Source of the DNA: Heteronotia binoei
Taxonomy: Eukaryota
Reading direction: 5' to 3'
Length of the DNA stretch: 64,000 nt
Assembly: GCF_032191835.1 (NCBI RefSeq)
Contig: NC_083223.1
Location: 258,354,001 to 258,418,000, forward strand
The notes below the pieces were generated by a model, which was not told the origin of the DNA, did not search any database, and worked only from the letters and a program-made list of their open reading frames with translations. A program made the translations under genes and the position numbers. Shown piece by piece: positions 8,401 to 64,000 of the stretch. The first letter of the stretch is position 1. Each line of letters starts with the position of its first letter.

Positions 8401-8549
8401 TTGGTTGAAATTGGGGGCCTTGGGATTCAGGGGAGTTGCATGTGGTAGAGGTTGCATTAGTCTGTTAGTTCATTTTTGTTATTTTGTTACAGAGACAGCT
8501 TGAAGGAGATGCGCTGAAAATATATATATTCTAAAGGGGAGAGACCCAC

Positions 8550-10015: not shown

Positions 10016-10024
10016 CAGTTTGGC

Positions 10025-16282: not shown

Positions 16283-18230
16283 ATTCAGTACTCCTCACCC
16301 GATTACATCATTCTACCGGCTAGAACCAGTTTTCCTCTGACAGATCTTTCTGAGTCATCTACCTGACAGTAGCTGTCAGATCAGTAGCAGTGCCTCATGC
16401 CTTACTGGCATTATTTTCTATGCCAACAGGAACTACCTTTACCTTTTACCTTTAATCTCCCATTTCCGATTTTGCTTTTCACTGCCCTTTTGTGTCATCA
16501 TTGTGTCACACATGCATCCCACCTCCTGCATGCCCTCAGGTTGTTCTCTGGAAAGGAAAGGTCCCCTGTGCAAGCACCAGTCGTTTCCGACTCTGGGGTG
16601 ACGTTGCTTTCACGTTTTCACGGCAGACTTTTTACGGGGTGATTTGCCATTGCCTTCCCCAGTCATCTACGCTTTCCCCCCAGCAAGCTGGGTACTCATT
16701 TTACCGACCTTGGAAGGATGGAAGGCTGAGTCAACCTCGAGCCAGCTACCTGAAAATCCAGCTTCCGCCGGGAATCGACATCAGGTTGTGAGCAGAGCTT
16801 AGGACTGCAGTGCTGCAGCTTTAACACTCTGCGCCACAGGACTCATTTAACTCATTGTTCTCTGAGTGACCCCCTAATTTTTAAAAGAGTAATGTTGATT
16901 GCATTAGGATGCAGGCTTTTTTTCATTATAATGCAGCAGGGGTGGGCCAAACAAAATGTAAGAGCCACATAGACTAAATGTCAGATGTTGAAGAGCTGCA
17001 AGACAAACGTCAGATGTCGGAAGGAAGGAAGAGGAGGAGGAGAGATAAGATGGTAAGGTAAGGTTAGGATAGGATGGATGGCGGTCTCGGCACCTCAGTG
17101 TTAACAGCAGCCGTGGACTTGCTCTCGATGGCCGCTCTTGAATCTGGCAGCTGGGAGACCCAATTCCAAGATCCGGGAAGGGTCTTGGAAGGCAAGCAGC
17201 TCGACAGAAGGCTCAGGAGATCGGCGGCAGTTGACTCTGAGTCACTGTTGCTGCAATGCCCCGCTGCTCTGATCGCCATTTTAAAATGGTATCAGAGGTG
17301 ACTGCTAGCTTCTTTTCTCTTCTATCCCTAATGATTTTTCAATGCATTTTTTTTCCTACTGCAATTATGGAAACTGTACTTTGCACTCTCCAGTCAGTAA
17401 TTTTGTTGCTTCTTGCAGGTGTCTGGCCCCAATTGCCCACTTATCTTCAGCCAGGTCCAGGGCCTTCTCGGTTGTTGCTCCAGCTCTTTTGGGCCAGCTT
17501 CCTGGCGAGGCCCCTGGTCTGCAAGATCTCACTGCATTGCACATGTAAGGGCCACTCCATTTCACCAGGCCTTTGGCTAATTTTTGTGCAACTACTATGG
17601 CCTGTACCTTGTAATTGTTTCTTGGATTACATTTTAACCACTACACCAAACTGGCTCTCAAATTGATACAGAGAAAGCGATACAGAAATTGACAGACAAG
17701 ATCCAAAAGGACTAGGGCATTACCTTATCGTAGAGATAGTGGGTATACATTCAAACACCCAGTTATTGTATTGCTTGGTTCTAATATCCCAGATGAACTG
17801 AGTTTGGCAGCTGCCTATTTTGTTCCTTAAATAAATATGCTGCAATGTGAGCCGTTTGGGAAGGTCAGTGTTCCCAGAAACAATAAAAGGAAACAAGACC
17901 GGGCTCTGTGATCAGGAAACTCTTGAATGCATGAACTCTTGAGATATCAACCCAACTTTGAGGTGGCTAGCACTGGCTCACGGTCGGTGAATTTCATGGC
18001 TGACGAGAAACTTGAACCTGTGCTCCTCCCCCTCCACCATCTGCCTCTTGAACCACGGTGATCAATTTCACTTTGACCACCAGCCACCTGGGATTCAGCT
18101 CTGCTCTTCTGGCCCTGTGCTTTATCTTCCCTAGATTGAATTTGTTTCGTGTCACATCTGTGGTTTATTTTATTTTGCAGGCTGGAAAGTAAAGACTGAT
18201 ATGGAAAACTGAAAGGACTAGGGGATTACC

Positions 18231-27200: not shown

Positions 27201-29330
27201 CGGCGCAAATGGAAACCGCCAAAAACCAGTTTTCATTTGCGCCGCAAAAGCTGCGGGACTTTGCGGCTCTTCCGGGTGCTCCGCAGCAATTGGTGCGAAA
27301 TCCGCGCAGATTCTGCGCGGTGAAGAGGGACGTCGCTGCCGATTAAGGTCAGTGCGAAAACGCCCATTCAGTACTCCTCACCCGATTACATCATTCTACC
27401 GGCTAGAACCAGTTTTCCTCTGACAGATCTTTCTGAGTCATCTACCTGACAGCAGCTGTCAGATCAGTAGCAGTGCCTCATGCCTTACTGGCATTATTTT
27501 CTATGCCAACAGGAACTACCTTTACCTTTTACCTTTAATCTCCCATTTCCGATTTTGCTTTTCACTGCCCTTTTGTGTCATCAGTGTGTCACACATGCAT
27601 CCCACCTCCTGCATGCCCTCAGGTTGTTCTCTGGAAAGGAAAGGTCCCCTGTGCAAGCACCAGTAGTTTCCGACTCTGGGGTGACGTTGCTTTCACGTTT
27701 TCACGGCAGACTTTTTACGGGGTGATTTGCCATTGCCTTCCCCAGTCATCTACGCTTTCCCCCCAGCAAGCTGGGTACTCATTTTACCGACCTTGGAAGG
27801 ATGGAAGGCTGAGTCAACCTCGAGCCGGCTACCTGAAAATCCAGCTTCCGCCGGGAATCGACATCAGGTTGTGAGCAGAGCTTAGGACTGCAGTACTGCA
27901 GCTTTAACACTCTGCGCCACAGGACTCATTTAACTCATTGTTCTCTGAGTGACCCCCTAATTTTTAAAAGAGTAATGTTGATTGCATTAGGATGCAGGCT
28001 TTTTTTCATTATAATACAGCAGGGGTGGGCCAAACAAAATGTAAGAGCCACATAGACTAAATGTCAGATGTTGAAGAGCTGCAAGACAAACGTCAGATGT
28101 CGGAAGGAAGAGGAGGAGGAGAGATAAGATGGTAAGGTAAGGTTAGGATAGGATGGATGGCGGTCTCGGCACCTCAGTGTTAACAGCAGCCGTGGACTTG
28201 CTCTCGATGGCCGCTCTTGAATCTGGCAGCTGGGGGATCTCTCAGCTGGGAGACCCAATTCCAAGATCCGGGAAGGGTCTTGGAAGGCAAGCAGCTCGAC
28301 AGAAGGCTCAGGAGATCGGCGGCAGTTGACTCTGAGTCACTGTTGCTGCAATGCCCCGCTGCTCTGATCGCCATTTTAAAATGGTATCAGAGGTGACTGC
28401 TGGCTTCTTTTCTCTTCTATCCCTAATGATTTTTCAATGCATTTTTTTTCCTACTGCAATTATGGAAACTGTACTTTGCACTCTCCAGTCAGTAATTTTG
28501 TTGCTTCTTGCAGGTGTCTGGCCCCAATTGCCCACTTATCTTCAGCCAGGTCCAGGGCCTTCTCGGTTGTTGCTCCAGCTCTTTTGGGCCAGCTTCCTGG
28601 CGAGGCCCCTGGTCTGCAAGATCTCACTGCATTGCACATGTAAGGGCCACTCCATTTCACCAGGCCTTTGGCTAATTTTTGTGCAACTACTATGGCCTGT
28701 ACCTTGTAATTGTTTCTTGGATTACATTTTAACCACTACACCAAACTGGCTCTCAAATTGATACAGAGAAAGCGATACAGAAATTGACAGACAAGATCCA
28801 AAAGGACTAGGGCATTACCTTATCGTAGAGATAGTGGGTATACATTCAAACACCCAGTTATTGTATTGCTTGGTTCTAATATCCCAGATGAACTGAGTTT
28901 GGCAGCTGCCTATTTTGTTCCTTAAATAAATATGCTGCAATGTGAGCCGTTTGGGAAGGTCAGTGTTCCCAGAAACAATAAAAGGAAACAAGACCGGGCT
29001 CTGTGATCAGGAAACTCTTGAATGCATGAACTCTTGAGATATCAACCCAACTTTGAGGTGGCTAGCACTGGCTCACGGTCGGTGAATTTCATGGCTGACG
29101 AGAAACTTGAACCTGTGCTCCTCCCCCTCCACCATCTGCCTCTTGAACCACGGTGATCAATTTCACTTTGACCACCAGCCACCTGGGATTCAGCTCTGCT
29201 CTTCTGGCCCTGTGCTTTATCTTCCCTAGATTGAATTTGTTTCGTGTCACATCTGTGGTTTATTTTATTTTGCAGGCTGGAAAGTAAAGACTGATATGGA
29301 AAACTGAAAGGACTAGGGGATTACCCAATT
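18231..29330 (+). repeat. Tandem segmental duplication, copy 2 (11.1 kb)
   Basis: Begins caattacatacg like 5348; ends ggattacccaatt like 18222-18235; lacks 7014-7873 and 9022-9913 of copy 1. Confidence 0.95.
27080..27365. mobile_element. Palindromic PIF/Harbinger-like MITE (duplicated copy)
   Basis: Same as 15997-16282. Confidence 0.85.
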
Positions 29331-30815: not shown

Positions 30816-33189
30816 ACCGTATACCTCCTCCAAAGGGACTAGCAGCGTTTCCTTCTTTGGTCTTTCTCAGGGACATACTAGAAACAGACCCATCTGGAAC
30901 TTTGACTCTCCAAGCAATTATTTTTATTGCTGGGCCAGGCTACCATGAAGTTAATATATGTCTTATGGCTTCTATTTACACTTGCAGGTGAATCTAAAAC
31001 CCAGAGACCTGACTGAGATTGACTGGGCTGTTTACCAGCATTGGGCTATCTACCAGGTAATGGATGTGATATGTGAGGGGTGATATGATCAGCATCTTCA
31101 AGTACTTGAAAGGCTGTCATATAGAGGATGGTGTTGTTTTCTGCAGTAGCAGAAAGTCTCACCAGAACCAATGGGTTGAAATTAAATCAAGAGGCTTTGC
31201 CTAAACATTAGGAAGAACTTCCTGACAGAGCAATTCCTCAGTGGAACAGGCTTCCTCTGCAATTTGCCACCTGACAGCGATGAGGATTCTGTAAACTTAT
31301 GGAGAGGTATCTGTGAATTTCCAGCCTTGTGCAGGAGTTTGGACTAGATAATTCTGGGTCCCCTCCAACTCTATAATTCTATGCCACCCCACTGGTAGCT
31401 GGAATGACCACTCAGCCAGTGGTTCAGGGACAAGCTACGGAACACAAATCCATATTTTCCTTAAAAATGTACACAATTAACAGTTGTATAAATATTATAT
31501 TTTTTTAATAAATACATACATTCAGTCACACCAACCCAGAAGCCCCTTGCCAGCACCATGACTTAAAAGCACACACAAAAAAGCCCCCCAAAAATGTTTA
31601 GGGCCAACTGTGCATGTTTTACTTACATGTGAGCTCCTGGAGAGAATTATGCTATGGAATGGCAACCCCCCCCCCCCCAAAAAAAAACCAAGTAGATGGG
31701 CTCAGCATGTAAACTGTATTTAGCATAGGGAAGGCAGGACAAAGAAAGGGAGGGGGCATGGAGCAGAGTGGAAGAGGTCTGGAAACTAGCAAGAGCTCAC
31801 CACCGTAACAATTAGCTTCCCGCACTAAAAATCCTTCCACAAAGCTTTACCTGCATCCGTTGGTATTATTACCATTTTCTTTTTTTTTAAACCGTGTTTA
31901 AAGAGGAAGAAAAACAAGAGACAAAACAGCCAAATACTAAATGGCCCCATATTGCTCAAAGAGGTTAACAGTGGGTTGGTCTCCATGCAGGTTTCATGTG
32001 AAGCCCAACACGGAAGTGTCTTCAGAGTAGATTCAAATGGGTGGCAAAGCTCTGCATGGGAAGGAGCCAATCTTGTCTATCTGCTTGGCCATCTCAACAT
32101 CATACAGCAGCTTTTCAGTGCAGGATTCCAGTTTGAAGTGCAATGTGCTAAAATTCACAAAAAGTACTGCTGCAGGCAATCTGACCTCTTAATTGTTACA
32201 AATAAGCAATGAAACCAGGTAAGAGAGCTGAGATGGGATTGGGACTCAGGGAATGTAAAAGGCCTTTACAGAAATTTAAGAAAACGGGTGATCTGAAGAT
32301 GGATCCGCAGGGCCTCTAGCTCAGGAGTGTCATTTCTTATGAGGGCCAAATCTGACTAAGATTAGGTAGCAGAGATATAAACAAACATTCTTATAACATT
32401 AGCACTTGGTCTTAAAGGTGCTTTCTTTGCATTTCTCCCATGGGATACAGGAAACTGGACAAAAAGCTCTGATTCTTTCCTTCCTTCCCCAGGGAGGAAG
32501 GAAAGAGCCTGAGCCAAGAGGAAGAGAGACTTGGCTCAATAGCTCTGCTGACCGAGAGAGCCTGGCAAAGCCTTCCCTCCTTCCTCCCCAAGGGAGGAGC
32601 CTCAGCCAATAGAGAAAACAGAGGTTTTGCTCTGTAGCTCCTGTGCAATTGAGCAAGCCTGGCAAAGCAACCTGTGATGTAGAAGGAAGCGAGAGAGGGA
32701 GAAGGAAGCAGATGACAGACAGTTACTCGGGGGCCTGATGGGGGCCCCGATTTGGCCCCCAGACCACATGTTTGCCACCCCTGCCCTAGCTGATCCCAAG
32801 GACAACATGAGTTTCAAATATCCTGGGCTGGGCTGGGACCCATTCTGGGCTAATTGGCAGTGGTAAACCTGCATTGGTATTCAGCCAGATTCTTTCTCCT
32901 CCACTTTTCCTTTCCCAAAACAACTCAGCCCAAGTCTTTAAGGCAATCCTGGGTTTCATTCCTGAATTCTTTAACGGCCTTTTCAGCTTGTTTAGGGTGC
33001 TGCATTCTTTGTTGCTTGAGAAGTCTAAATGTTTACAGAATCCGGGGGAAGAACTGGGTCAGACCAAAACCTGTGGGGAAACGAAATCGATAAGATGCAC
33101 CATATCTGTACACACCTTCTCCCAAAATCAACTGTTCTTTTGTACACATCAAGCCCTTTAACAGCTTGCAAACAGAGCCCTATCACACC

Positions 33190-33314
33190 TCCTGTCCCCA
33201 CAACCTCATCCTATGCAGAATGACTGGGCCATGAAGCCCTTTTGTCCCAGTGCTTGAGGATAGAACCAGCAGATGGAAATGCCACTGGCACCGAAGACAG
33301 AACACTGGGGGACA
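33190..33314 (-). ncRNA. SNORA57: Intronic box H/ACA snoRNA, probably SNORA57 (U99)
   Basis: Minus strand: hairpin 1 (CCCAGTG/CACTGGG), H box ACAAAA (33240-33245), hairpin 2 (TCATTCT/AGGATGA), then ACA plus 3 nt (33193-33195). The 5' pocket UGUCUUCG + CCUC pairs with 18S GGAGG-UU-CGAAGACG, with 14 nt to the H box. Lies in a GT-AG intron (33071-33323). The name is inferred from synteny: human SNORA57 lies head-to-head with C11orf98. Confidence 0.72.
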
Positions 33315-34479
33315 TTTCTTTACCTCCGGACATAACAGAGCCGGGCACTGAGCCACCCGGGCCTGCCAAGAAAAGGAGGCCTCTTCTCACTGGCATTACA
33401 AAATAATCTTTTCTAGGTCTAGGTACTAAAAAACCCTTAAGCAGATTACAGCTGCTCTCAGAAGACACACAGAGCAGAAACACAGGCCAGCAGACCAGGC
33501 TAAAAGACCTTGTGGTTGCAGGCAAGATCTAATACAGAAAACACACAAAGGGGAGTACCACAGAAAGCAAGGCTCAGGGAGGGAGTTCAAGAAGTTCCCA
33601 GTTCAGCCCTGACCTGGATAGCTCAGGCAAGCCCAATCTCGTCAGATCTTAGAAGTCAAACAGGGTTGACTCTGGTCAATACTTTGATGGGAGACCTCCT
33701 TGGAATACCAGAAGTTGGGAGGCAGGGTCAAGCTTTAGTCAGCCATCTTCCTGAATATCCTCCATGCTCCCACTAGGGGTCAGTCACTAGAGGTCATCAA
33801 CAAAATAAAAAAAAAAGTCCCCAGCATTCTTGTCTAAGTACGACAAGGCTGGGAAGGCTTTTCTCTGCCAGAAGCAAAGAAAAGCTGCTGGGGCTCAGAC
33901 AAGTAGATCAAACTGAGCCAATGGGCTGAATCAGTAGAGCAACAATATGGAAACAGGTTTTCCCTCTTCAACTCTAGCTTCTGGAACAGGGCTGCCAACC
34001 ACCAGGTGGGGCCTGGACTTACCCCAGAATTAAAACTGATGACAGAGATTTGTCCTCCTGGAGAAAACGGCAGCTTCACTGGGTGAACTCTACGGCCTCA
34101 CTTCCCTGCTGAGCATCCTTTCTTCTCAAAACTCCACCCTCCCCAGGCATTTCCCAACCCGGATCCTTTTGGTGCTTTGGTGACCAAGAAAACCCACTAT
34201 AACATCCACTTTGCAAATCCTCAGAATACTCCGTTTCTAACAGCCTTTCTTTAACTAGTAAACTTAATTCCTAGCAAATGCCTTCTTTGCCGCCTAGATG
34301 GCCTTCCTTTCAATACCTCTTTCCATTCCATGACCTTCTGTAGTGTTTTTGCTGTCAAGTCCCAGGTGACTTCAGGTGACCCCGTAGGGTTTTCAAGATA
34401 AGAGACCTCCAGAGGTTGTTTGTCATTGCCTGCCTCTGCATAGCTACTCTGGTATTCCTTGGAGATCTTTCATCCTAAT

Positions 34480-36399: not shown

Positions 36400-39300
36400 G
36401 TACTGGAGTGTTCTTTTTGTGGAGTGGGGGAAGGTTTAGTATTTCTTGCACGGCTTTTAGAATGATAACAGTGCTTCTCCTACTATCGTTTAGTAGCTCT
36501 TACACTAACCCTGTAAGGTAGGCCAGTGTTACAGCTACATAGTTACGTGAGAAGCCATGTTGGAGCAGGCCAATGTCCCACCCAGTCAAACACTCTGTCA
36601 TGCAGTGGCCAAAAAAAATGTCATCAGGAGGTCCACCAGTGGGGCCAGAACACTAGAAGCCCTCCCACTGTCCCCCCCCCCCCCCACAATCACGAAGAAT
36701 ACAGAGCATCACTGCCCCTGACAGAGAGTTCTAACAATACACTGTGGCTAATAGCCACTGATGGCCCTCTGCTCCAGATGTTTATCCAGTTCCCTCTTGA
36801 AACTTGCTATGCTTGTAGCCACCACCACCTCCTGTGGCACTGAATTCCATGTATTAATCACTCTTTGGGTGAAGAAGTACTTCCTTTTATCCGTTCTAAC
36901 CCAATAGCTCAGCAATTTCATTTAATGCCCATGAGTTCTTGTATTGTGAGGAAGGGAGAAAAGTACTTCTCTCTACCTTCTTTATCCTATGCATAATCTT
37001 GTAAATCTATCATGTCACCCCTCAGTCAACATTTCTCCAAGCTAAAGAGCCCCAAGTGCTTTAACCATTCTTCATAGGGAAAGTGTTCCAACCCTTTAAT
37101 CATTCTAGTTGCCCTTTTCTGCTAAAGAGTTATGGAGATAAAGAGGTTTATCATGATAAACTTTCTGAGCAAGCTCGCTTTTGAAGGACATTCAGTGAGG
37201 CAGAGAAAAGATGGGAAGAGGTACTACAGGACTGTTTCTTGAAGTCTGCTGGACTGAGTTTAGGTGTGTATGCCTTGGAGTGCTGGAACCCTTTGAGATT
37301 TTCGTTTGAAGAGCTGCCAATAGCGTAGTTCATTTAGACTCTTACTGAAACTCTTTGGGCAGCAAATTCTGGACAGAATGAAAAAAAAAGGTCCTTCGTG
37401 TGACTTTGTGGTACTTACTGCCAGAAGATGTGGTGAAGGTGGCAAATTTAGAACAGAAATCTAAACTTGTTTCAGCAATTGAGGGGGGAGCTGTGGCTCA
37501 GTGGCAGAGCATCTGCTTTTCAGGTCAAAGATCCCATGATCAGTCCCCTTCATCTCCCATTAAAAGGATCAGGTAGCGGGTTGATTAGAAAGACCTCTTA
37601 TCTAAGATCCTGGAGAGCCACTGCCAGCTTGAGTAGACAGTAGAAGAAGAAGATGATGATATTGGATTTATATCCCGCCCTCCACTCCGAAGAGTCTCAG
37701 AGCGGCTCACAATCTCCTTTATCTTCCTCCCCCACAACAGACACCCTGTGAGGTGGGTGGGGCTGGAGAGGGCTCTCACAGCAGCTGCCCTTTCAAGGAC
37801 AACCTCTGCCAGAGCTATGGCTGACCCAAGGCCATGCTAGCAGGTGCAAGTGGAGGAGTGGGGAATCAAACCTGGTTCTCCCAGATAAGAGTCCTCACAC
37901 TTAACCACTACATCAAACTGGCTCAGTACTGATCTTGATGGACCCAGGGTCTGATTCAGAATGAGGCCGCTTCATGTGTTGCAGTTATTAACCATGGAGG
38001 CTAAATGCCTTCTTATGCCCCCAGTGAATTTGTGTCAGAGGTAAGATTTGAACTGGGGGCCCTGCCTTACATTTTCACAATCGCTGTATGAAAATTTCTA
38101 AATCCAGATTTAGGCCCTCTCTTTGCAAGCAGCAGCCCTTGCTTTTGAGCGCATTCCACCCATTAGGATTTGACTTGCTGGTTCAGAGGGTTTGTGTCTG
38201 ATGTTCACATAATCTGTCTGTCGGACTTAGGAGCTGCAGAAGAAACTTTTCAAAAGACGCCGCGTTTTGAGCAAGCAGAAGAGAAAGAAACACCGGATTG
38301 TGGGCGCCGTGGTGGATGAGGGGCTCATCACCGTCCACCACTTGAAGAAACGCTGGTGAGTTGTGCTTAGCCTGGGATCCTGGCTCTGTGGAAGTTCTCT
38401 GCTGGAAAGCTTGGGAAGGACTAGGGATCAAGTTGCAAGGGCAGGGTGACTGCAGCTTGGATTTTATCCTGAGCCCCTGGGGATAGCTCTGCTGGTGTGT
38501 GAAGCAGGATGAGACCTTGGATATTCATTGCCTCCTCTCACTGAAGAGTTTCCTTGCACGATGTCTTCCTGGCCTCTCTTCTAGCTCCAGCTCTCGATCT
38601 AACATCACTCTTTCGGGGAAGAAGAGGAGGAAACTGCTGAAGCAGCTCCGCCATACTGCGAAGGAGATGGTTGCCATGCAAGGTAAGCCTCACTCCCTTG
38701 GGAGGAGCCTGGGAAGAGGACCCCAGTCCCTTGGGCACAGGGATTTGGCTGGTCCCAGGGAGGGGAAACTCTGTCCTAGAAGTCCTCATTGAGTGCTAAG
38801 GATGGTGAGACCTGGAGGGAACAGTCCTTTCTAGGGGTTTTTTTTTTAGCAGGAACGCACAGGAACACTGGCCTGGCACCAGGGGGTGTGGCCTAATATG
38901 CAAATGAGTTCCTGCTGGGTGAAACAATGGTGATGTCAGAGGGGGGCCTAACATGCAAATGAGTTCCTACTGGGCTTTTTCTACAAAAAAAGCCCTGGTC
39001 CTTTCTCTTTTTTTGAGAGCCAGTTTGGTGTAGTGGTAAAATGCGTGGACTCTTATTTGGGAGAACGGGGTTTGATCCCCCACTCCTCCACTTGCAGCTG
39101 CTGTAATGGCTTTGGGTCAGCCATAGCTCTCGTAGGAGCAGTCCTTGAAAGGGCAGCTTCTGGGAGAGCTCTCTCAGTCTTACCCACCTCACAGGGTGTC
39201 TGCTGTGGGGGAAGAAGGTAAAGGAGATTGTGAGCTGCTCTGAGACTCTGAGATTCAGAGTATAGGGTGGGATATAAATCCAATATCATCTTCTACCCAG

Positions 39301-42784: not shown

Positions 42785-45700
42785 CGAAAACCTGCAGTTA
42801 GGTTTTTGCCAGCTGCCTGGAGGAAGAATTGTTCTTCTCCTTTAACAGGGATGTTGTTTAGCAGCTGATGTTTACTTCCATACCATGAAAAGCATTGGGT
42901 GCCCCATTTCCACATATAATATACTCTCATACCCCCATTTCCACATATTAAGACTCTATTATACTCTCCAGGCTTGTTAGCAACCCCTAGATATTTAGCT
43001 TCGTGCCATAAAAATTATCAGCATCCCATTTCAACATACTAAGCTATCTAAAGAAGAGGGGGTTTCGTGGCTCATTAAGAGCCTTTCTCTTACAGTAAAT
43101 GCACACATTAAAAAAGACTTCTAACAGCTACAATTGCCAGCATCCTGGAGAAAGTGTCCTATCCCTTTAGCAGAAGGGTGTTACAAATTCATAAGGGGAT
43201 GTTATCTACCTCCAGGCCACGAAAAGCTTTAGCTGGCCATTTCCACACCTTAAGCCTATTAAAGGAGCGAGACCTTTTGCATTCTTCTACAATCAACTTG
43301 TATTGACCATTGCAAAAACAATTACAATCATTTTTTCCCTTCCAGGCAATTGGCACCCCTGTCAATATCAGCGGCGGGGAAAGTGGGGCTTGCCAGAGCA
43401 GCGGCAGAGAGAGTGGGGGCTGCCAGAGCGGGGGGGGGGGCTCTATCGAAAATTTTATTCCGTGGGCCCCCCACCTAAAATTTTCTGGCTATGGGCCTGC
43501 TTGATAACTACTGCAGATTAAAATGATGTTAAAGTAACAGATAAGAGGGACCAGTTTAAAAGCTGGTAATCCCATACAAGAGACTGGTATGTCTTCTACT
43601 GATCTAGGGAGACTTCTGGGTCATTGATCCTTTGGGGTGCAGAAATTCCCTTACCTGGCCAAAAAACCTAGGTGCCATCAGGAGGTCCATCAGTGGGGCC
43701 AGGACACTAGAAGCCCTCCCACTGTTGCCCCCCAAAGCACCAAGAATAAGCATCACTGCCCAAGGAGAGTTCCATCAACAGCCTGTAGTTAATAGCCACT
43801 GATGGACCTCTGCTCCAGAAGTAGCTCCAGTCCCCTCTTGAAGCTGGCTATGCTTGTAGCTGCCACCAACGTTTTAGTCCAATGGCACCTTTGAGATCAA
43901 CAAAGATGTTTTCCAGGTATAAGCTTTCATTTGCACACATGCTTTAGCAGATACACTGAAATATCCACTTCAATGTATCTGAAAAAGTGCATGCACAAGA
44001 AAGCTTAGTTCTTCAGTTTGGAACTGAAGCAAGAGCTGAGAACTTGGGAGTTCTCCAAGCTTGGAGGTGCCGCCTTGGAGGGAGCAGCGCCGCTTTGGAG
44101 GAAATTTACCTGGTGCAGGATTTGCAGACATGCTGTTCACAGGAGTACTGGCTTCTATGCTAAATACAACAAATATTACAAACAGCACCAGTCGTTCTTT
44201 ACAGCTGTCTTATTTGAAGGAAATTCCAACTGCTAGTGCGGCCAGTGAAGCAAAAAAGTGAACACACGATAAGGATACAGCAAAAACCAAAACAAACTGC
44301 AACCAATTTATCTTATACAACTGAAAGTCTCTTATGATGCAATTCATATAAACCAATAAATGGATATAGGTATATAAAATATCATTACACCTCAATACCA
44401 AATATTTATGAATTGTACAGAAATATCGTCATAGTGCTGAATATATGTGTCAGAATCAAAATGAAACTCGAAGATGGACTTCCCATTTCAAAATATAAAG
44501 ACTTGCTTTCAATACTGATATATTATGAAAACACCTTAAAGATGAAGAAGATGATGATGAAGATATTGGATTTATATCCCGCCCTCCACTCCGAAGAGTC
44601 TCAGAGCGGCTCACAATCTTCTTTACCTTCCTCCCCCACAACAAACACCCTGTGAGGTGGGTGGGGCTGGAGAGGGCTCTCACAGCAGCTGCCTTTTCAA
44701 GGACAACTTCTGCCAGAGCTATGGCTGACCCAAGGCCATGCTAGCAGGTGCAAGTGGAGGAGTGGGGAATCAAACCCGGTTCTCCCAGATAAGAGTCTGC
44801 ACACTTAACCACTACACCAAACTGGCTCTCCTGAACAAAGGGTCATACACAGATTTTATAGGGAACTGGAAGAGAATTAGCTCCATACCAAAAGCAATTA
44901 TCCATCCTTCTATATGGGGTTTAAGTACTCTATTCAGAGTCATCCTAGTTTGGCCATTCAGTAATTCTCCCCCTGGGTGGATCCTTCCTCTTCTGACCAG
45001 AGCCTATGCGAATCCCCTTTCTGCAAAGTAGGCTCAGGCTCCCACACCTTGTCCTGGGAAAGCGGAGGTAACTTCCCCCACCCATCAACAGCTCTGGGTT
45101 CCGGGTATTCCTGTGATCTGCAAGAGGCACTTCAGAACAGGAGGAGCCTTGCAGGGTTGGACCTTCCTCTCCACTCCCCTTTTCAGCAAAGGCCAGCTAG
45201 ATTCCTTCAGGATACCCACAAGCTGAATATGCCCTCCTGCAGATGGGTAGACTGCCTCAGAATTGGGAGGATGTCTGGCTCCTGGCTTTATTCATTTTTA
45301 GGAATTGTGGGGTGGGGTGTGTGTTCCTTTTCTATAGGGCAGACTGCTGCTATTTGAATGTTCTGCAGCTTTTATCCAGGTAGATATTACCTTTATTAAG
45401 GCAAAAGGGAACTTTCCTGCTTCCCCCTTCCAATTGCAGCTCACTGATCTTGGAGATGCTGCTGGGGGGAGGGGCGGGAATTCACCAGAGGAATAACTTG
45501 GAAGGGGAGGATCTGCAGTGGGAAAGGGAAACCGGTGGAAACTGCCAGTCTAGTCTGGATCTAACCCTTTGTGATTGCCTCAAGTGTTTTTAAATGGAGT
45601 ATGAAGATCACAAAGCTACTTAAAAGCTGCATTTCCCAATGCCCCATCCCAACTGGTAAGGGTGGAAATATGCCTTTGCTTAGGCTAGCCATGTTGCCCT

Positions 45701-46163
45701 TTTTCGGTCGTTTTGGGATTAGAGACAATGACTTTCTTTCTTCAGGTCCCCTAGAGGGACTAGTTATTATGGGCTATCCTTTCCTAGGAATTTGGCTGGC
45801 ACGATTTCACTTTAACTGGCTGATCTGCTTTTTGTAAAAACAAACAAACAAAAAAACCTAGTGAACTTGATTTTCTTGTTGGGAAATCTGGCACTGCTGC
45901 ACTCCTCCCGGTTAACCGAGATGCATAAAATTTGGATTGCGGACAGCCAAGGACTGCCAGTGCTGGAGAAACAAAGGGAGAGGAAGAAAATACGAGTCTG
46001 GAGGAGGAGGCGGGAATCCTCGCTCCTTTTCTCGCGCCATTTCTCCTTTGCGGTTCCTGAGCTGCCGGGAACGTCCCACCCCTTTGAAAAACGGCTCCAG
46101 GAGGAAACACGGAGACAGAAACGCCCCGGAAACAGCCGAGAATCGAAAGGGGTTAACGGAAGT

Positions 46164-46201
46164 GCCGTGCATCATGGGAAAGGGGGCGGACGTATGCAGA
46201 T
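46164..46201 (+). promoter_or_regulatory. U2 copy 1 distal sequence element (SPH/ZNF143 site, GC box, octamer variant)
   Basis: Reverse-oriented TTCCCATGATGCACGGC, then GGGGCGG, then ATGCAGAT, at about -260 to -220 from the U2 start. Confidence 0.8.
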
Positions 46202-46360
46202 CACCGAGCCCGGCATTCCAAGCGGTGAAATTGACAAAACCGCCTTTCAGGAGGCGGCTGACCGGGAAGGCGGGAAGAGCGGCGGCTTCGGAATGCAGCG
46301 GGCGGCCTCCTGGCCCCGGCTGAGCTGGCTGCGGCCTTCGGCACGCGAGGCTGGGGGTGG

Positions 46361-46380
46361 CTCGCTTAACCTGGAAGCCT
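46361..46380 (+). promoter_or_regulatory. U2 copy 1 proximal sequence element (PSE)
   Basis: CTCGCTTAACCTGGAAGCCT at about -61 to -42; PSE-like sequence at the expected position, conserved in copy 2. Confidence 0.6.
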
Positions 46381-46421
46381 ATCGGGTCGCTAGGGAAGGC
46401 ACTTTCGGGGAGCTTTGCGGT

Positions 46422-46608
46422 ATCGCTTCTCGGCCTTTTGGCTAAGATCAAGTGTAGTATCTGTTCTTATCAGTTTAATATCTGATACGTCCTCTATCTG
46501 AGGACTATATATTAAATGGATTTTTGGGACTGGGAGATGGAATAGGGGCTTGCTCCGTCCACTCCACGCATCGACCTGGTATTGCAGTACCTCCAGGAAC
46601 GGTGCACC
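46422..46608 (+). ncRNA. RNU2: U2 spliceosomal snRNA gene, copy 1
   Basis: Full length ATCGCTTCTCGGCC...GGTGCACC; branch-point recognition GTAGTA and Sm site ATTTTTG intact. Differences from recalled human U2 (C78U, A85U, 107-110 AGCA>GACU, A126G) fall in a loop, in linkers, or keep a G-U pair. DSE, PSE and 3' box are present. Confidence 0.98.
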
Positions 46609-46631
46609 TCCCCCCGGGGAGAATATTGATG

Positions 46632-46644
46632 GTTCAAAAACAGA
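46632..46644 (+). terminator. U2 copy 1 3' box
   Basis: GTTCAAAAACAGA, 23 nt after the U2 end; matches the GTTYN(0-3)AAARRYAGA-type consensus. Confidence 0.85.
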
Positions 46645-47752
46645 CTGGAAAAAATCAATTTTATCTCTTTAACCTTTTTATCTTTTGCATTTTTCTTCCT
46701 ATTAATAAGTACACAGAGGGTTGGACTAGATGACCATAGAGGTCCCTTCCTGTATTATTCTGAAGATCCTTCCTATGTAGAGTGCTGAAATAACTCTTGC
46801 TGAAATCAGTTTTTCTCTGAAGCGATCACTTTCTGCCCAGGGTTGGGCTGGAGACAGAGAGGCTTCTTCTACAGAGGAGACCAGGAGCGGGGGCTGGCTG
46901 TGGAGGAGGGGGCGCTCACAGCATGGGCTTCTTGCCTGCCCCGCGGGCCGGAGAACCGGCACTCTGCTTCCCCGAAGAGTCTCAGAGCGGCTCACAATCT
47001 CCTTTACCTTCCTCCGCCACAACAGACACCCTGTGAGGTGGGTGGGGCTGGAGAGGGCTCTCACAGCAGCTGCCCTTTCAAGGACAACCTCTGCCAGAGC
47101 TATGGCAGACCCAAGGCCATTCCAGCAGGTGCAAGTGGAGGAGTGGGGAATCAAACCCGGTTCTCCCAGATAAGAGTCCGCACACTTAACCACTACACCA
47201 AACTGGCTCTCCAGCCAGTTTGAAGGCTCCAGCCCAGCGCTCCCCCCACCCCGCCCCCCATCAACCATCAGCTCTGGCTGGGGCTGCTGCAGCGGCTCTC
47301 TCTTATTTTCATGGCCTCATTTTGGGCCCCGCGGCCCCACCACTTTTCCCATGCCCCCCTAACATTTTCCAGCTAGGAGCCTGAGGGTCCCACGAATGTT
47401 TGGGAGGGTAAGGAAGCTATTTCAGTTTAAATCTATTTAGATTTAAGGACACCACACCTCAAATCAACTAAACGCTTCTATGTCCGGCTCAGTTAAGGCC
47501 TCAAGAGGCAGACCTCAGGGACTTAGTCCTGAATCCCACCATTCTATTGCACCACCACCTCGTGCCTATTATGAAAAAGAGTCGGGAGTCCCTTTTCTGT
47601 TGGAGCAAATAAGTTTATAACAGTTAAGACAAAACCACTTGAGTGTGAAAAGTTAAGAGGAAACGGGGAGAAATGAAAATAACCAGTAAGTGGGGGGGGG
47701 GGGGGGGGACGAAAGAGAGAGAAAAGTAACTTACAACAGAGAAATTTCTCAG

Positions 47753-47765
47753 TCTGTTTTTGAAC
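47753..47765 (-). terminator. U2 copy 2 3' box
   Basis: Reverse complement reads GTTCAAAAACAGA. Confidence 0.85.
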
Positions 47766-47788
47766 CATCGATATTCTCCCCGGGGGGA

Positions 47789-47975
47789 GGTGCACCGTTC
47801 CTGGAGGTACTGCAATACCAGGTCGATGCGTGGAGTGGACGGAGCAAGCCCCTATTCCATCTCCCAGTCCCAAAAATCCATTTAATATATAGTCCTCAGA
47901 TAGAGGACGTATCAGATATTAAACTGATAAGAACAGATACTACACTTGATCTTAGCCAAAAGGCCGAGAAGCGAT
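47789..47975 (-). ncRNA. RNU2: U2 spliceosomal snRNA gene, copy 2 (identical to copy 1)
   Basis: Exact reverse complement of 46422-46608, with its own DSE, PSE and 3' box. Confidence 0.98.
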
Positions 47976-48016
47976 ACCGCAAAGCTCCCCGAAAGTGCCC
48001 TCCCTAGCGACCCGAT

Positions 48017-48236
48017 AGGCTTCCAGGTTAAGCGAGCCACCTGCCAGCCTCGCGTGCCGAAGGCCGCAGCCAGCTCAGCCGGGGCCAGGAGGCCGCCCGC
48101 TGCATTCCGAAGCCGCCGCTCTTCCCGCCTTCCCGGTCAGCCGCCTCCTGAAAGGCGGTTTTGTCAATTTCACCGCTTGGAATGCCGGGCTCGGTGATCT
48201 GCATACGTCCGCCCCCTTTCCCATGATGGACGGCAC
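48017..48236 (-). promoter_or_regulatory. U2 copy 2 promoter (PSE 48017-48036; DSE 48197-48236)
   Basis: Near-identical reverse complement of the copy 1 promoter. Confidence 0.75.
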
Positions 48237-51200
48237 TTTCCCGTCTTTTACAATAAGGGAGAACTGTTAGGAGGTCGCCTCCACCTTCAGACTCGTATTT
48301 TCTCTGCAGTTCGAATTTTATGCATCTCGGTTAACTTGGAGGAATGGATCAGATTTCCCAACAAGAAAATGGAGTTCACTGTTTTAACTTTTACAAAAAG
48401 CAGATCAGCCAGTTAAAGTGAAATCGTGCCAGCCAGATTCCCTAGAAAAGGATAGCCCGTAATAACCAGCCCCTCCAGGGTACCTGGAGAAAGAAAGTCA
48501 TTGTCTCTAATCCCAAACTAGCCGAAAAGGGGGCAACATGTCCAGCCCAACCAAAGGCATATTTCTACCCTGACCAATGTGGTAGGGACATTGGGAAAAG
48601 CAGCTTATTAAGTAGCTTCGTGATCTTCATACTCCACTTAAAAACACTCGAGGCAAATCACAAAGGGTTAGTTCCAGACTAGACTAGCAGTTTCCACCTA
48701 TTTCCCCTTCCCACTGCAGACCCTCCCCCTCCCAAGTTATTCCTCTGGTCTCCCCCCCCCCCCCCCAAGAGTAGCATCTCCAAGATCAGTGAACTGCAAT
48801 TGAAGGGGAAGCAGGAAAGTTCCTTTTTGCCTTAATAAAGGTAATATCTACCTGGATAAAAGCTGCAGAACATTCAAATAGCAGTCTGTCCTAAAGAAAA
48901 TTACCCCCCCCCCCCCAATCCCCTTCCCATGGAGAAAGAAAGTGATTGTATCTAATCCCAAACCAACCGAAAAAGGGCAACATGTCCAGCCCAAGCAAAG
49001 GCATATTTCTATCCTGACCAATGCGGTACGGATGTCAGGAAAGGCACTGCAGACCTCTCCCCACCCTAGTTATTCCCCGCTCCCCCCGCCCCACAGAGCA
49101 GCATCTCCAAGATCAGTGAGCTGCAGTGGGAGAGGCAAGAAAGTTCCATTCTTCCTTAATTACATCTACCTGGATAAAAGCTGCAGAACATTCAAACAGC
49201 AGCAGTCTGTCCTAAAGAAAATGACCCCCCCCCCAAAAAAAAGAACCCCATCCCCCTGCAATCCCTAAAAACGAATAGAGCCAGGAGCCAGACATGAATA
49301 ATAGGACCTCCTAATTCAGAAGCATTCTGCCAGTCTGCAGGAGGGCTGTTACCTTCATGTCCAGCTTGTGGGTGTCCTGGAGAGATCTAGCTGGCCTTTG
49401 CTGGGAAGAGGGAAGTGGAAAGAGGTCTCTTTGGTCCAACCCTGCAGGGCTCCTCGTGTTCTGAGGTGCCTGCTGCAAATCACAGGAATACTCTGGCTCG
49501 AACCAAGAGCTGTTGATTAGCGGGGGGGGGGGGGAGTTATTACAACCACAGACTAGAAGCCCCCCCTTTCCAGGACAAGGTGTTGTGGGAGGGTGACTGT
49601 TACTTTGCAGAGAAGGATCCACCCACCCAGAGGGAAGGCTGGTGAATGGGAAATCTAGGATGAGTCTGAATAGGATACTTAAACCCCAGGTAAAAGGAGG
49701 GACAATTACTTTAGTATGACTTTTTTTTTAAAGGTAAAGGCAATCCCCTGTGCAAGCACCAGTCGTTTCTGAGTCTGAGGTGACGTTGCTTTCACAATGT
49801 TTTCACGGCAGACTTTTTACGGGGTGGTTTGCCATTTCCTTCCCAGTCATCTACACTTTACCTCCAGCAAGCTGAGTACTCATTTTACCGACCTTGGAAG
49901 GATGGAAAGCTGAGCCAACCTGGAGCCGGCTACCTGAAACCAGCTTCCACTGGGATTGAACTCAGGTCGTGAGCAGAAAGTTCAGACTGCAGTACTGCAG
50001 CTTTACCACTCTGCGCCACAGGGCTAACTCTCCCCCACCACCCCTATTAAATCTGCGTATGACCCTTCCTTTGTCTTTCATGGCGCCACAAGAGTCTCTG
50101 ATTCGACTGCAGCAGGCTCACAGGGCATTTCCAGTAGCCGACATTAACAGTGGAGGTGGAAAGAGGGAGTCGATATCAGAATAGCAGCTGTCTTACAAGA
50201 CCTATTTCCTTCAGGCTTTAACTGTGGGCTTCTGGGAGGAATACAGCTATTGCTCACATTGGCACTTTTATGAGCTTGTTTAGCCTGAAATGTACTTTAA
50301 AATACCTTTTCCCAGATGCTTTATCTTTTTAAACACCTGCCCAACAGACAGTGGGTTTCCCCTCCCTCTGTGTCTGGTGTTTCCTGCTCTTTCACATCTA
50401 TCCCTTTCCCCACATCTGTTCCTTCCTCAGAAAAATATCAGTACTTTAAAACCAGTACAAAAAGATGTGTGTTCTATCAATCGCTTCTAGATTTTTTTTA
50501 ATAACCTCACAAAGCAAAATAAAACCATGAGGAAAATTTCCCTTTCATTTACATTTGATGGCGTTTTTCCTCTGACTGGGCTCAGTAGTGGTCAGTGGGG
50601 TTTATAGGGTTGCCATCTCTGGGTTAGGAAATACCTGGAGATTTTGGGATGGAGCCTGAGGACAGTGGGATTTTAGGAGGGGGAGTCCTCAGTGGGGTAT
50701 AATGCCATAGAGTTCATCTCTGAAGCAACCATTTTCTTCAGGTGATGATGTTATTGGATTTATATACCACCCTCCACTCCAAATCTCAGAGTCTCAGAGC
50801 GGTTCACAATCTCCTTTATCTTCCTCCCCAACAACAGACACCCTGTGAGAGGGCTCTCACAGCAGCTGCCCTTTCAAGGCAGCCTCTGCCAAAGCTATGG
50901 CTGACCCAAGGCCATTCCAGCAGGTGCATGTGGAGGAGTGGGGAATCAAACCCGGTTCTCCCAGATAAGAGTTCACACACTTAACCACTACACCAAACTG
51001 GCTCTGATCTCTCAAACTGATCTCTATCATATGGAGATTTGGTGTAATTCCAGGAGTTCTCCAGGCCACACCTGGAGGAGGGCTTTGAATGACACTCACC
51101 TGCAGAAGCATTACAGAGTATGAACTAAATGGTTTAATTGACCAGGTGGACTGGTACAAAAGTCAGTAGGTTTGCAAAAACCTTTGAGCTGGTGTGGTAA

Positions 51201-54415: not shown

Positions 54416-55690
54416 TTACTGTAGTTTAATTTTCCTAGTCATCTGGCCAGTGCAATAGTGAGCGATAATCTGAATAAGAATCAAAGAGTTGGCAAAAAGA
54501 AAGAATAAGCCTGCTAGCCATATCAGCAAGAAAGTGTTCTGCCCCTCGAATTCCAAAAAGTAAGCAGGTGCTAGCCACAGAGCTTGCCCCACCAGCCACA
54601 GCAAGAAGAGGAGCGTAGCCTGCTGCCAGGACATCCTCAGGCAGGGGATTACAGGGGGCAGAAGGCAAAGGTACCACAGAAAATATTGGGAGGTGCACAC
54701 CTTGTTAAAACTCACAAACACAGCAGTGTGCAGGAAGGAGCAGAAGACAAGGTCTTTGTAGTAAGCGAAAGAAATACCCAAAAGCAGCAGGAGCTGTGGC
54801 AAGAAAGCTGCAAGTCCGAGGGAAAAACTCCACTCGCTTTCTGCAGTCAAGTACAGCATGTAGAAATAGGGCGAGAAGTTGTGGCAGATATCTCTCCGGG
54901 TCACGTGGTAGAAATAGGTCTGCTCTAGAAATTCCCGGCCGTAAGAGAAATAAAAAAGGAGGCTGAGGGCAGCAAAGGTGCCTCCGGCCACAGCTGCAAA
55001 AAGCAGAACGTCCCGACTGAAGAGTCTTAAGAAAAACCTCCAGAAGTTGTCCACTTTTTGTTTCTTCGGAACATCTGCATTTCCTTTTTCATGGCTTTGA
55101 CCACTTTGCAAATGGAGAACTATTGGCAGCGCGTAGGTCACCGGGTAAATTTTCATATGTACAGACAGGCCATACAGAACAGCAGCCTTGGCTAGATGCT
55201 TCTTTTCCATATAATACATGGTGCCCAGGACCAGGCTAGCTACCAGGGACTCGGCGTTTCCTCGGCTGGATACTGTCATGGGCAGAGGGTTGAGGAGCCA
55301 GAATGAGCAGCACCCGCAGGCCTTCCTGCTCTCCAGTCCTCTGAGCAGCAGAATCCGGTACATGAGGTATGCAGCGACCAGATCCCCAGCAATAAAGAGG
55401 AGCTTTCCATACAGATCAGAAATGTAGATGTTTGGGGTTAAGATCCAGGCCAGCAGCGGAGTGTAACGGTACGTGGCTCTTAGGTAAGGGGACTTCCCCT
55501 CTGTGATATACTTGGCAGCGTCAGTGAATACTTGATAATCGATGTCTGTATACTTCACCAACATTGTTCTGTCCTGATAAACTCCATAGAAGACGAGCAG
55601 GAGCCTGATTATGAAAGCGCTGGCGAATAAAACATCTTTCCTGAGACACCCTGTAACGATTGGCTTCCCAAATATCTGATGGGGCATCAT
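54416..55690 (-). CDS. PIGM: GPI mannosyltransferase 1 (PIG-M), 424 aa, uninterrupted CDS
   Basis: ORF contains [13 protein letters not shown] (DXD motif), [36 protein letters not shown] and [13 protein letters not shown], all PIG-M hallmarks; length close to human (423 aa). ATTAAA at 54365-54370 (minus). Confidence 0.98.
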
Positions 55691-57378: not shown

Positions 57379-57679
57379 TACAGACAGATTAACACGGCTA
57401 CCCACCTTGATCCATCTCTTGCAGTAGGTCACTAGGTCCTCTAGGACTATGTAAAGGGCTGCAACCTTTTGTGCATGTGCAGGACACACATATTGTGTCT
57501 CATGAAAAGTCTTGAAATAGACCAGCTCTGTTCCCCCGCCCTCCCCCGCAATCATTTTACTAATGGAGAAATATCTTAGTTGAGGATGTCCCATCCTATG
57601 GAAGCAGAGCCACCTAATGAAAGCAGTGAATGGAAGTGAACAGAGAGAAGCCACCATTGGTGAACATTTGAAATTATTA

Positions 57680-61770: not shown

Positions 61771-61859
61771 ATGTCTGCTCTGTGCGACCCCGCTGGGGTT
61801 GTTGGTCCTCCGGGGTCCGCCCCCAGCCCGAAACCGGCAGTCGCCCCGCCGTCGCTCAG
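61771..61859 (+). CDS. INTS5: Integrator complex subunit 5, coding exon 1 (MSALCDPAGVVGPPGSAPSPKPAVAPPSL + AG); exon 2 lies beyond the window
   Basis: N-terminus matches recalled human INTS5 MSALCDPPGAPGPPGPAP...APLS. Phase-2 donor CAG|GTATTC would complete the Ser codon. Lies in a CpG island, downstream of C11orf98 in the same orientation, as in human. Confidence 0.88.
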
Positions 61860-62249
61860 GTATTCTCGCCACTGGGACCCACATGCCAAGTTTAGGTCTG
61901 GAGATGGTCTGCAGGCTGGAACCTGTGGCTACGTATCGGAGCTGGGGTGATTGGTGTGGGGAGAGATGAAACTAGACTTTATTGTTGTTGCTTAATTCCA
62001 GCAATGTGGGTTATTCTTAACAGTATAGTATTTATTTGGAACATTTTTATGCTGCTTTTCCAGGAACTTGCCCAGTTATTATTAATGCAATTTGTGTTGT
62101 ATTAATCATTTCAGCTACGGATCCCTTTCTTGAAGAATATGTTTGCATTTTTAAACCTCGTTTGGATCGGCTTTTGTTCCTGTAGGATCCAGGTTTTTCT
62201 GGATGGAAAATAGGATAAAAGATACAACAAAATGTTAATCCATATGTGG

Positions 62250-62432
62250 GGAGCCCAGTCTTGTCGTATCTCAGAAGCTAAGCAGGGTCAGCCCTGGTTA
62301 GTGTTTGGATGGGAGACCTCCAAGGAATACCAGGGTCGTGATGCAGAGGCAGGCAATGCCAACCACCTCTGAATGTCTCTTGCCTTGAAAACCCTACAGG
62401 GTTGGCATGTCAGCTGTGAGTTGACTGAACTT
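62250..62432 (+). mobile_element. 5S rRNA-derived SINE with RTE-like tail
   Basis: Degenerate 5S head (ATCTCAGAAGCTAAGCAGGGTC..GGATGGGAGACC) followed by non-5S body; relatives at 33607-33750(+), 34378-34479 plus 35307-35395(-), 59700-59812(-), 63611-63772(+). Confidence 0.75.
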
Positions 62433-64000
62433 TCCGCCACCATCATGTATGGAGGCTTTGTGGACTAACATAAACCAAAGGAATAGATCCCTGCCCCAAG
62501 GAGCTTGCAGTCTGAAAAGTGAAATACAAAAACAGTGATTCAACACAAACAGTGGAGTGAGGTAGTAGAATTCTGATAGAATGGACTGTGCCACTTCAGG
62601 TAGCAGGTGGAAGATGTTGGTTTTTAAATGCTTATCACATGCAAGTTTCAGGAAAAATAGGAATTCAAACCATGGCCTCCCTGAACCTAGTCCAGCACTA
62701 CACCAGGTAACCACTATGATAGCTGTAAGGAACCTCCATGTTCACAAGTAGTACACCACTGAATATCATAGGCTGACTACTTCTGGAAACCATGTTGGTC
62801 CATTATGATCAGCTCTGGAGAAACATTTTCTTTGTTCATATGCTAGTGGGGTAAAAAAAGGTAGGTAAAGGTAGTCCCCTGTGCAAGCACCGAGTCGTTA
62901 CCAACCCATGGGGTGATGTTACATCATGGCGTTTTCTTGGCAGACTTTGGTTTGCCATTGCCAGTCATCTACACTTTACGCCCAGCAAGCTGGGTACTCA
63001 TTTTACCAACTTCAGAAGAATGGAAGGCCCGTGTCAACCTTGAAACAGCTACCTGAACCCGGCTTCCACTGGGATCAAACTCAGATCGTGAGCAGAGCTT
63101 GAACTGCAGTACTGCAGCTTACCACTCTGTGCCATGGTGTTCTGTAGCAACTGAGGTAGGGTGCATAAATCTTGATTTGATCTTCTCATCATTGTATGAT
63201 GTTGGGTCAGGGAATGGATGATGCTGGAGATTCCACAAATTTGGAGTGAGGAATGGCTAGCAACATATCTTCCTGAGTCTCTGGTAGAGACAGGCAAGAC
63301 CCAGACACAGGGGATGTGGTGCTGTTATTATTGTTGTTGTTTTGGTAGGGTGACAGATTTTGAGTTCCACAGAATGCTTTGTACGGAGGTCAAAAGAGAA
63401 CAATCCAAGATCTCCTTGTACAGTATTCTACCTGTGAAGCTATCTCAACACGTCATTTGCTGGAGGTTTCTCCCCTTCTCTTTCAGTGTTATAGGGTGAT
63501 TCTTGTGCAGGATAACATTGGCACTTATGGACTTTCCCCTATTGTTCTGTTATGACCAAGGTTTCTTGTGAAGATACCTCTATATAGTTGGATTATAGAT
63601 TACCATTTTAGCCTCATCAGATCTCAGAAGCTAAACAGGATTAGCCAGGTTAGTACATGGATGGGAGCTTGCAAGCAAGTGTAGCCTCACTTGCTATGTA
63701 GGGGCAGGTGGTGGCAAACCACCTCTTTTCATCTCTTGCCTTGAAAACTGCAACTTGATTGCACTTTCCACATACGAGGAAGCAGATTTATTATTTTTTT
63801 AAAAAAAGTCATAATAAAGGAATGCATTAAGAATAAATTACCGTTTACAGAGTTGGTGTGCAGACTTTAGAGCTGCACATAATTAATTCTTAGACTACAT
63901 TTGCATTTTAAAAAATGAAAACTGGGAAAGGCCCAAAATATTTGTATGTGAGTTCATGGCATTTCGTCCCATCTACAACTCCCCGCTCCTCAGTTTTAAG

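Follow-up and report, generated by a model that had tools for sequence, protein, structure and literature searches.

We analysed a 64,000-nucleotide stretch of the genome of the gecko Heteronotia binoei (contig NC_083223.1; hereafter the window, numbered from its first letter), which contains two genes for U2 small nuclear RNA (snRNA). A search with the Rfam model of U2 (RF00004) gave two full-length matches, both spanning model positions 1-192, against a gathering score of 46 (Table 1). The genes, termed A and B, are convergent and lie tail-to-tail with their 3' ends facing each other, and the branch-point recognition element GUAGUA (GUGUAGUAUCUGUUC) and the Sm site (AUUUUUGG) were visible in the covariance alignment of the pair. 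Judged from these sequence features, the convergent pair represents apparently functional U2 snRNA genes. No U2 copy other than genes A and B was found by Rfam in the window, and a tandem array of the RNU2-1 or Xenopus type was ruled out there, as the window holds only two, inverted copies rather than many head-to-tail units. The window contains no N and is therefore gapless.

The arms of the inverted duplication were defined by repeat finding, BLAST and global alignment of arm A with the reverse complement of arm B. They are separated by a unique spacer that carries a young short interspersed element (SINE), which is 96% identical to window copies at 2199-2484, 37642-37924 and 44546-44832. 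A SINE also lies at or near the outer end of each arm. No inverted homology was found past these flanking SINEs, and neither ARAGORN nor Rfam detected a tRNA-like head in the SINEs. An earlier note, made from the letters of the window, had described two identical, tail-to-tail U2 genes in an inverted duplication with a unique 1.1-kb spacer and a SINE; its coordinates and its description of the duplication held on re-analysis.

Alignment of the core cassette of the two arms (46160-46652 vs. 48238-47745) comprised 494 columns with 6 substitutions and one 1-nt indel, corresponding to 98.8% identity. The differences fell at -253, -68/-67, -25, +206 and +227/+228 relative to the gene, with none in the 191-nt coding region, in agreement with the handful of differing sites that the earlier note had reported for the flanking core. 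The one at +206 is a T/C difference located in the 3' extension of pre-U2. The limits of the core lie close to those of the regulatory elements, 3 nt upstream of an SPH-like motif on the outer side and 8 nt past the 3' box on the inner side. A distal sequence element (DSE) was present, made up of the SPH-like motif, a GC box and the octamer-like ATGCAGAT, the last being invariant in seven of seven aligned gecko copies, and the 3' box GTTCAAAAACAGA was found 20 nt past the end of the U2 model in both genes. The mammalian consensus of the proximal sequence element (PSE) had no match within 3 mismatches in the U2 promoter, and in the PSE region only the block CCTGSAAG at -51..-44 was conserved across gecko genera. 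Thus, of the core motifs named in the earlier note, the DSE and the 3' box were borne out, and for the PSE there is a candidate core, CCTGGAAG. The GC content of the promoter was 65% with a CpG observed/expected ratio of 0.93, and the outer arms were CpG-depleted (0.10-0.24). A gecko-specific 25-nt word from the promoter gave no exact match in a metagenome scan.

Elsewhere in the window, a PSE-like word with 2 mismatches to the mammalian consensus was seen in the SNORA57 host-gene region (31553-31570, plus strand), and an SPH-like word lies beside a PSE-like word at 57532-57569; in both cases such counts were no higher than chance.

Table 1. Features of the U2 gene pair and its surroundings (window coordinates; K2P, Kimura two-parameter distance between the arms).
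Feature	Position	Strand	Remarks
SINE family 1	44546-44832	+	51 bp beyond the outer limit of arm A
Arm A, outer diverged part	44884-46159		inverted homology to 48239-49718
Outer stratum	44884-45346		20.8% mismatches (79% identity); K2P 0.25
Middle stratum	45347-45932		11.0% mismatches (89% identity); K2P 0.12
Core-adjacent zone	45933-46159		27% mismatches (73% identity), ~150 bp in arm A only; K2P 0.35
Core stratum	46160-46652		1.2% mismatches; K2P 0.012
U2-A promoter (-262..-1), CpG island	46160-46421	+	3 substitutions and 1 indel vs. copy B
U2-A SPH-like motif (DSE)	46163-46181	minus-strand match	2 mismatches to the SPH consensus
U2-A GC box (DSE)	about 46182-46189	+ promoter	
U2-A octamer-like ATGCAGAT (DSE)	46194-46201	+ promoter	-228..-221
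U2-A candidate PSE core CCTGGAAG	46371-46378	+ promoter	CCTGSAAG block at -51..-44
U2 snRNA gene A	46422-46612	+	Rfam RF00004, 194.5 bits, full length
U2-A 3' flank, inner repeat end	46613-46652	+	3' box GTTCAAAAACAGA at 46632-46644; ~40 bp, conserved also between genera
Spacer, unique	46653-47744		1,092 bp; young SINE at 46972-47212; arm-to-arm 42% identity, i.e., no homology
U2-B 3' flank	47745-47784	-	3' box at 47753-47765 (motif match)
U2 snRNA gene B	47785-47975	-	Rfam RF00004, 194.5 bits; 191/191 identical to gene A
U2-B promoter	47976-48238	-	SPH-like motif at 48217-48235 carries the -253 difference
Arm B, outer diverged part	48239-49718		inverted homology to arm A; arm-specific partial tandem duplication
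SINE family 2	49724-50026	+	abuts the outer end of arm B

Outside the core, the homology between 44884-46159 and 49718-48239 amounted to 84% identity over 1,079 aligned columns, with a further 598 columns (over a third) gapped. The earlier note had estimated homology of roughly 75-85% for about 1.3 kb further out, with large indels, and the measured range was 73-89%. It had also described a gradient of identity, but the profile we observed was not smooth and consisted of steps of 79%, 89% and 73% (the last with many indels) followed by 99%, and these steps were significant in Fisher tests (2e-5 for outer vs. middle stratum and 6e-12 for middle stratum vs. core). Every step coincided with a large indel. 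The boundary between the outer and middle strata is a partial tandem duplication specific to arm B (48485-49234), in which 48712-48913 resembles 49045-49234 at 82% and 48485-48588 resembles 48930-49032 at 90%, and which is about as old as the divergence of the arms; the boundary between the middle stratum and the core is an indel-rich zone just upstream of the DSE. The longest perfect runs inside the core were 229 and 185 bp, compared to at most 60 bp outside. At the mismatch rate of the outer arms, the probability of finding 4 or fewer mismatches in 493 columns was ~1e-31, which excludes chance as the source of core identity.

A 60-nt perfect run (45347-45406 vs. 48825-48884) was observed amid outer arms that otherwise diverge by 11-21% (permutation p about 0.001). 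It directly abuts the arm-B insertion and is partly conserved in the second tandem copy of arm B, and no counterpart was detected in Gekko. This run may have been left over from a conversion tract, or it may be a small element under constraint.

The near-identical tract has sharp ends and sits inside diverged, collinear arms, and divergence is 10-20 times higher in the outer arms (K 0.12-0.25) than in the core (K 0.012). Since the same arms are 11-25% diverged outside a core that is 99% identical, the core would have been overwritten long after the arms arose. We counted substitutions at the 218 core positions that lie outside both the candidate motifs and the coding region, and found at most 3 (P = 4e-13 at a rate of 16% and 3e-8 at a rate of 11%, both taken from the outer arms). 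Taken alone, this count is compatible with constraint acting over the whole promoter and does not exclude it.

Orthologous loci in other geckos were reached via exact-protein look-ups of PIGM orthologues, with PIGM and INTS5 as anchors, and comprised those of Paroedura picta (L002), Gekko kuhli (L003) and Sphaerodactylus townsendi (L004), alongside the one Heteronotia genome. Convergent U2 genes were detected by Rfam downstream of PIGM in both Paroedura picta and Gekko kuhli. The cluster in Paroedura (L002 16455-19814) contains four copies in the order + + - -, of which three are intact and the outer minus-strand copy is decayed (58 bits). Its outer plus-strand copy (P1) and inner minus-strand copy (D2) share a cassette of 95.4% identity (L002 16160-16684 vs. 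18968-18450), and the inner plus-strand copy (P2) is intact, with flanks only 81-82% like the P1 and D2 cassettes. Different degrees of homogenisation coexist within this single cluster. Gekko kuhli has a convergent pair and a partial third copy, and the distal arm runs past the end of L003; the cassettes of the pair are 96.7% identical (L003 20748-21409 vs. 22798-22131), and 100% identical from 21403-21620 vs. 22002-21785. In comparisons between genera, the homology detected by BLAST (93-97% identity) was confined to the U2 coding region and some 40 bp of the 3' flank.

We aligned seven gecko U2 promoters and compared zones of the alignment within species and between genera. Promoter identity within species was 0.99 in Heteronotia, 0.97 in Gekko and 0.95 for Paroedura P1 and D2, and fell to 0.65-0.74 between genera; in the comparison of orthologous arms across geckos that the earlier note had proposed, paralogues were thus more alike within species than between genera. 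Between-genera identity was 0.72-0.80 in the DSE zone, 0.66-0.67 in the inter-motif stretch, which also carries a 30-bp indel, 0.41-0.50 at -65..-44 and 0.47-0.60 at -43..-1. All four zones were 0.97-1.00 identical between the two Heteronotia copies (0.99 for the inter-motif stretch), and 47 of 262 promoter columns hold a state that is common to the two Heteronotia copies and absent from all others. Across genera, the conserved blocks were ATGCAGAT with the GC box and the SPH-like neighbour, and CCTGSAAG; their conservation in the alignment indicates that they are likely to be functional motifs. Within Paroedura, 28% of the aligned inter-motif positions differ between D2 and P2, a third intact copy, indicating that those positions tolerate change. 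The sequence that separates DSE from PSE is usually free of constraint, and this was confirmed for geckos, in which the inter-motif promoter is free to diverge between genera. With only 66-67% identity between genera, selection cannot explain the arm-to-arm identity of this stretch.

In a maximum-likelihood tree of positions -300..-1, copies grouped strictly by species (support 100/100 for Heteronotia, 100/99 for Gekko and 96/96 for Paroedura). The arms did not group with their orthologues in place of their paralogues, which supports the arm-to-arm homogenisation claimed in the earlier note. Divergence of the inter-motif stretch between genera corresponded to a K of about 0.44 (Jukes-Cantor conversion of 0.67 identity). 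Since the outer arms of Heteronotia are less diverged than this (K 0.12-0.25), they therefore formed, or were last homogenised, after Heteronotia split from Gekko and Paroedura. The duplication, called old in the earlier note, is thus old when measured against its own core, but not against the divergence of Heteronotia from the other two genera. Both outer arms are about equally similar to the only Gekko arm available.

What we observed, then, was a convergent pair architecture, a step in identity, a lack of inter-motif conservation between genera and a grouping of copies by species. We propose that non-reciprocal homologous recombination, or gene conversion, recently copied one version of the 494-bp cassette over the other, and probably did so more than once. 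The cassette begins immediately upstream of the DSE and ends immediately beyond the 3' box, and the arms of the inverted duplication around it have largely decayed through 11-25% divergence and many indels. The donor would have been the other arm. The tract appears to be bounded by heterology, which on the inner side would be the end of the repeat and on the outer side the indel-rich zone with its ~150 bp of A-specific sequence. The convertible domain may have shrunk stepwise as large indels arose, leaving behind the steps of 79%, 89% and 99%, such that only the core would still hold perfect runs long enough to recombine. We consider it probable that gene conversion between the arms keeps the two Heteronotia U2 cassettes alike, promoter included.

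Several points weigh against this interpretation. Only one Heteronotia genome was available, ongoing exchange was not observed directly, and a third U2 locus elsewhere in the genome could have acted as donor. The GC content of the core (65%) is as expected of a CpG-island promoter anyway, and provides no evidence for GC-biased conversion. Identity is higher between the outer arms of Heteronotia (84-89%) than between these arms and the Gekko arm (74-86%, in BLAST-detectable patches), and the pair is therefore not proven to be older than the generic split. Clustering by species could, taken alone, also be expected from independent duplications; in Heteronotia this is answered by the presence of arms 11-25% diverged around a core that is 99% identical.

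The similarity of the cassettes could alternatively have been imposed from outside the pair, either because a third U2 locus converted both arms or because a fresh DNA-level copy of the cassette replaced that of one arm, as part of genome-wide concerted evolution or birth-and-death. The Paroedura cluster lends this some support: the similar cassettes P1 and D2 are not the symmetric central pair, and the central P2 is the less similar copy, which indicates that cassette-sized transfers occur between non-mirror copies at that locus. However, the window holds no other U2 gene, and proximity strongly favours the neighbouring arm as donor, so that we regard an external source as unlikely. An assembly artefact, in the form of a false inverted join or of a repeat collapsed in polishing, would also produce near-identical inverted copies, but is highly improbable, given that diagnostic sites and the outer parts distinguish the arms, that the spacer is unique and the window gapless, and that the same convergent layout is present in independent assemblies of two other genera (three assemblies in all). 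Purifying selection alone, acting to keep the whole promoter and 3' flank identical, would fit the close coincidence of the identical block with the functional unit from DSE to 3' box and the conservation of the DSE motifs and the ~40-bp 3' flank between genera, but it explains identity outside the motifs less well, as the earlier note had argued, and on these alignments is excluded as the cause of arm identity because of the inter-motif divergence between genera and the grouping of copies by species, leaving it scarcely any credibility.

The genes around the pair provided information on the age of the locus. The order in the window is SNORA57 (33240-33379, minus strand, Rfam), the U2 pair, PIGM (minus strand) and INTS5/GANAB from about 61771 onward. 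PIGM (54416-55690) is an intact, intronless gene of 424 aa (Pfam Mannosyl_trans, E 3e-94) situated between the U2 pair and INTS5. It was the only match in Pfam scans of about 37 open reading frames (ORFs) around the U2 locus, and the C11orf98 family (DUF5564) was matched in outgroup loci only. C11orf98, INTS5 and GANAB lie side by side in Podarcis, Trachemys and Sceloporus, C11orf98 and INTS5 being 2-4 kb apart, and no U2 was found in that interval in any of the three. Similarly, no U2 was found within 10 kb of PIGM in Hemicordylus, Podarcis, Anolis, Chrysemys or Sphaerodactylus. The pair thus belongs to a gecko-specific U2 cluster between C11orf98 and PIGM/INTS5, and a U2 locus in the C11orf98-INTS5 interval is specific to Gekkota among the sampled species.

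In Sphaerodactylus townsendi, a decayed U2 (68.9 bits), which is without its first ~45 nt and has kept the 3' box, was found at a distance of 5.3 kb upstream of INTS5; PIGM lies 62 Mb from it on the same chromosome. The U2-PIGM-INTS5 adjacency is present in Heteronotia and Paroedura, with Gekko sharing only the PIGM-U2 part, and adjacency of PIGM to U2/INTS5 is absent in Sphaerodactylus, Podarcis, Anolis, Hemicordylus and Chrysemys, from which we infer that PIGM relocated in gekkonids. The U2 locus is therefore older than the gekkonid/sphaerodactylid split, and PIGM joined it in gekkonids.

Strict orthology to mammalian RNU2-2 was suggested by SNORA57, C11orf98 and the gene list of the pig interval, which reads U2, WDR74 ... 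SNORA57, C11orf98, INTS5. It was rejected, since the corresponding turtle, lacertid and iguanian intervals are without U2, and since the position of RNU2-2, next to WDR74/SNHG1, is not that of the gecko pair between C11orf98 and INTS5; only the wider linkage block is shared with the pig. The homologue tables of PIGM and INTS5 also included mammalian proteins, and the loci compared at DNA level were those of reptiles.

The public annotation fuses INTS5 and GANAB (window 61771-64000 and beyond, L001 1-3920), and the name neutral alpha-glucosidase AB is given to a Heteronotia protein that has INTS5 Pfam domains, as it is to some frog proteins. The window also contains a head-to-tail segmental duplication of about 11-13 kb (5348-18235 vs. 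18231-29330, 96.3-98.7% identity), which includes duplicated 136-aa ORFs at 17256-17666 and 28351-28761.

In Gekko kuhli, the distal U2 is split after U2 nucleotide 37 by a 128-bp insertion (L003 22003-22130) flanked by a 7-bp duplication, ATCTGTT, and pieces related to the insertion were found at L003 16003-16315. The site after nucleotide 37 is the target of the U2-specific retrotransposons Utopia and Keno, which lack long terminal repeats (non-LTR; PMC4640811). One arm of the Gekko palindrome has thus been freshly disrupted at the Utopia/Keno site, and the other arm is intact. In Sphaerodactylus, sequence just upstream of the 5'-truncated U2 (L009 about 4540-4600) resembles the end of the Gekko insertion by eye. 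One could speculate that the micro-palindrome is the main or only source of U2 snRNA in gekkonids, a new lineage-specific locus that would rely on a self-correcting inverted pair and not on a tandem array, and in which conversion would also restore a copy hit by a retrotransposon, but we consider this doubtful.

Inverted paralogous gene pairs are actively maintained in Caenorhabditis (Zhao et al. 2007, PMC1803023), and there, as in geckos, the inverted-repeat structure is more conserved across species than the sequence, which was ascribed to gene conversion; those pairs are protein-coding and the intergenic region is itself the repeat, whereas the central spacer of the gecko pair is unique. 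Multi-copy snRNA genes are all described as evolving in concert in PMC4291461, which cites Pavelitz 1995, 1999, Mount 2007 and Marz 2008. According to the same source, U2 and its non-coding flanks are homogenised within species in the primate RNU2-1 array (Pavelitz et al. 1995, 1999), with paralogues closer within than between species, as in the gecko pair; however, RNU2-1 as described there is a head-to-tail array of many ~6-kb units homogenised in situ, in contrast to two inverted copies and a 494-bp tract in the gecko. Unlike in such an array, unequal exchange between the gecko inverted repeats is impossible without inverting the spacer. Arm-to-arm conversion is well documented in sex-chromosome palindromes, which share with the gecko pair inverted arms, a unique spacer and non-reciprocal exchange that keeps the arms alike (PMC3723533, PMC8981503). 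The scale differs, at 0.5 kb in the gecko vs. tens of kb to Mb, and unlike in those palindromes most of each gecko arm has escaped conversion and the cargo is an snRNA gene transcribed by RNA polymerase II (Pol II). Human U3 snRNA genes reportedly lie in a complex inverted repeat at 17p11.2, a finding attributed to Gao, Frey and Matera in 1997, as cited in PMC2196410; both are snRNA-type genes in inverted repeats, but U3 is a different RNA and the structure is much larger.

The process itself is known, both as concerted evolution of snRNA genes and as arm-to-arm conversion in palindromes, and the gecko pair is a clean but ordinary example that leaves the current understanding of snRNA gene evolution unchanged. 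Specific to it are the two-gene inverted U2 layout, the survival of this layout in different gecko genera and a tract of cassette size. As an example of an snRNA gene evolving in concert, the pair is compact and unusually clean, and the locus offers an internal clock, in the form of three strata of arm divergence, together with a cross-species control for promoter positions that are truly constrained. It also provides a natural footprint of the gecko U2 promoter, consisting of the ATGCAGAT octamer variant, the GC box, the SPH-like motif, CCTGSAAG and the 3' box. To our knowledge, snRNA genes are usually described as being without stable orthology; the gecko pair indicates that a U2 locus is able to persist at one chromosomal position across gecko families.

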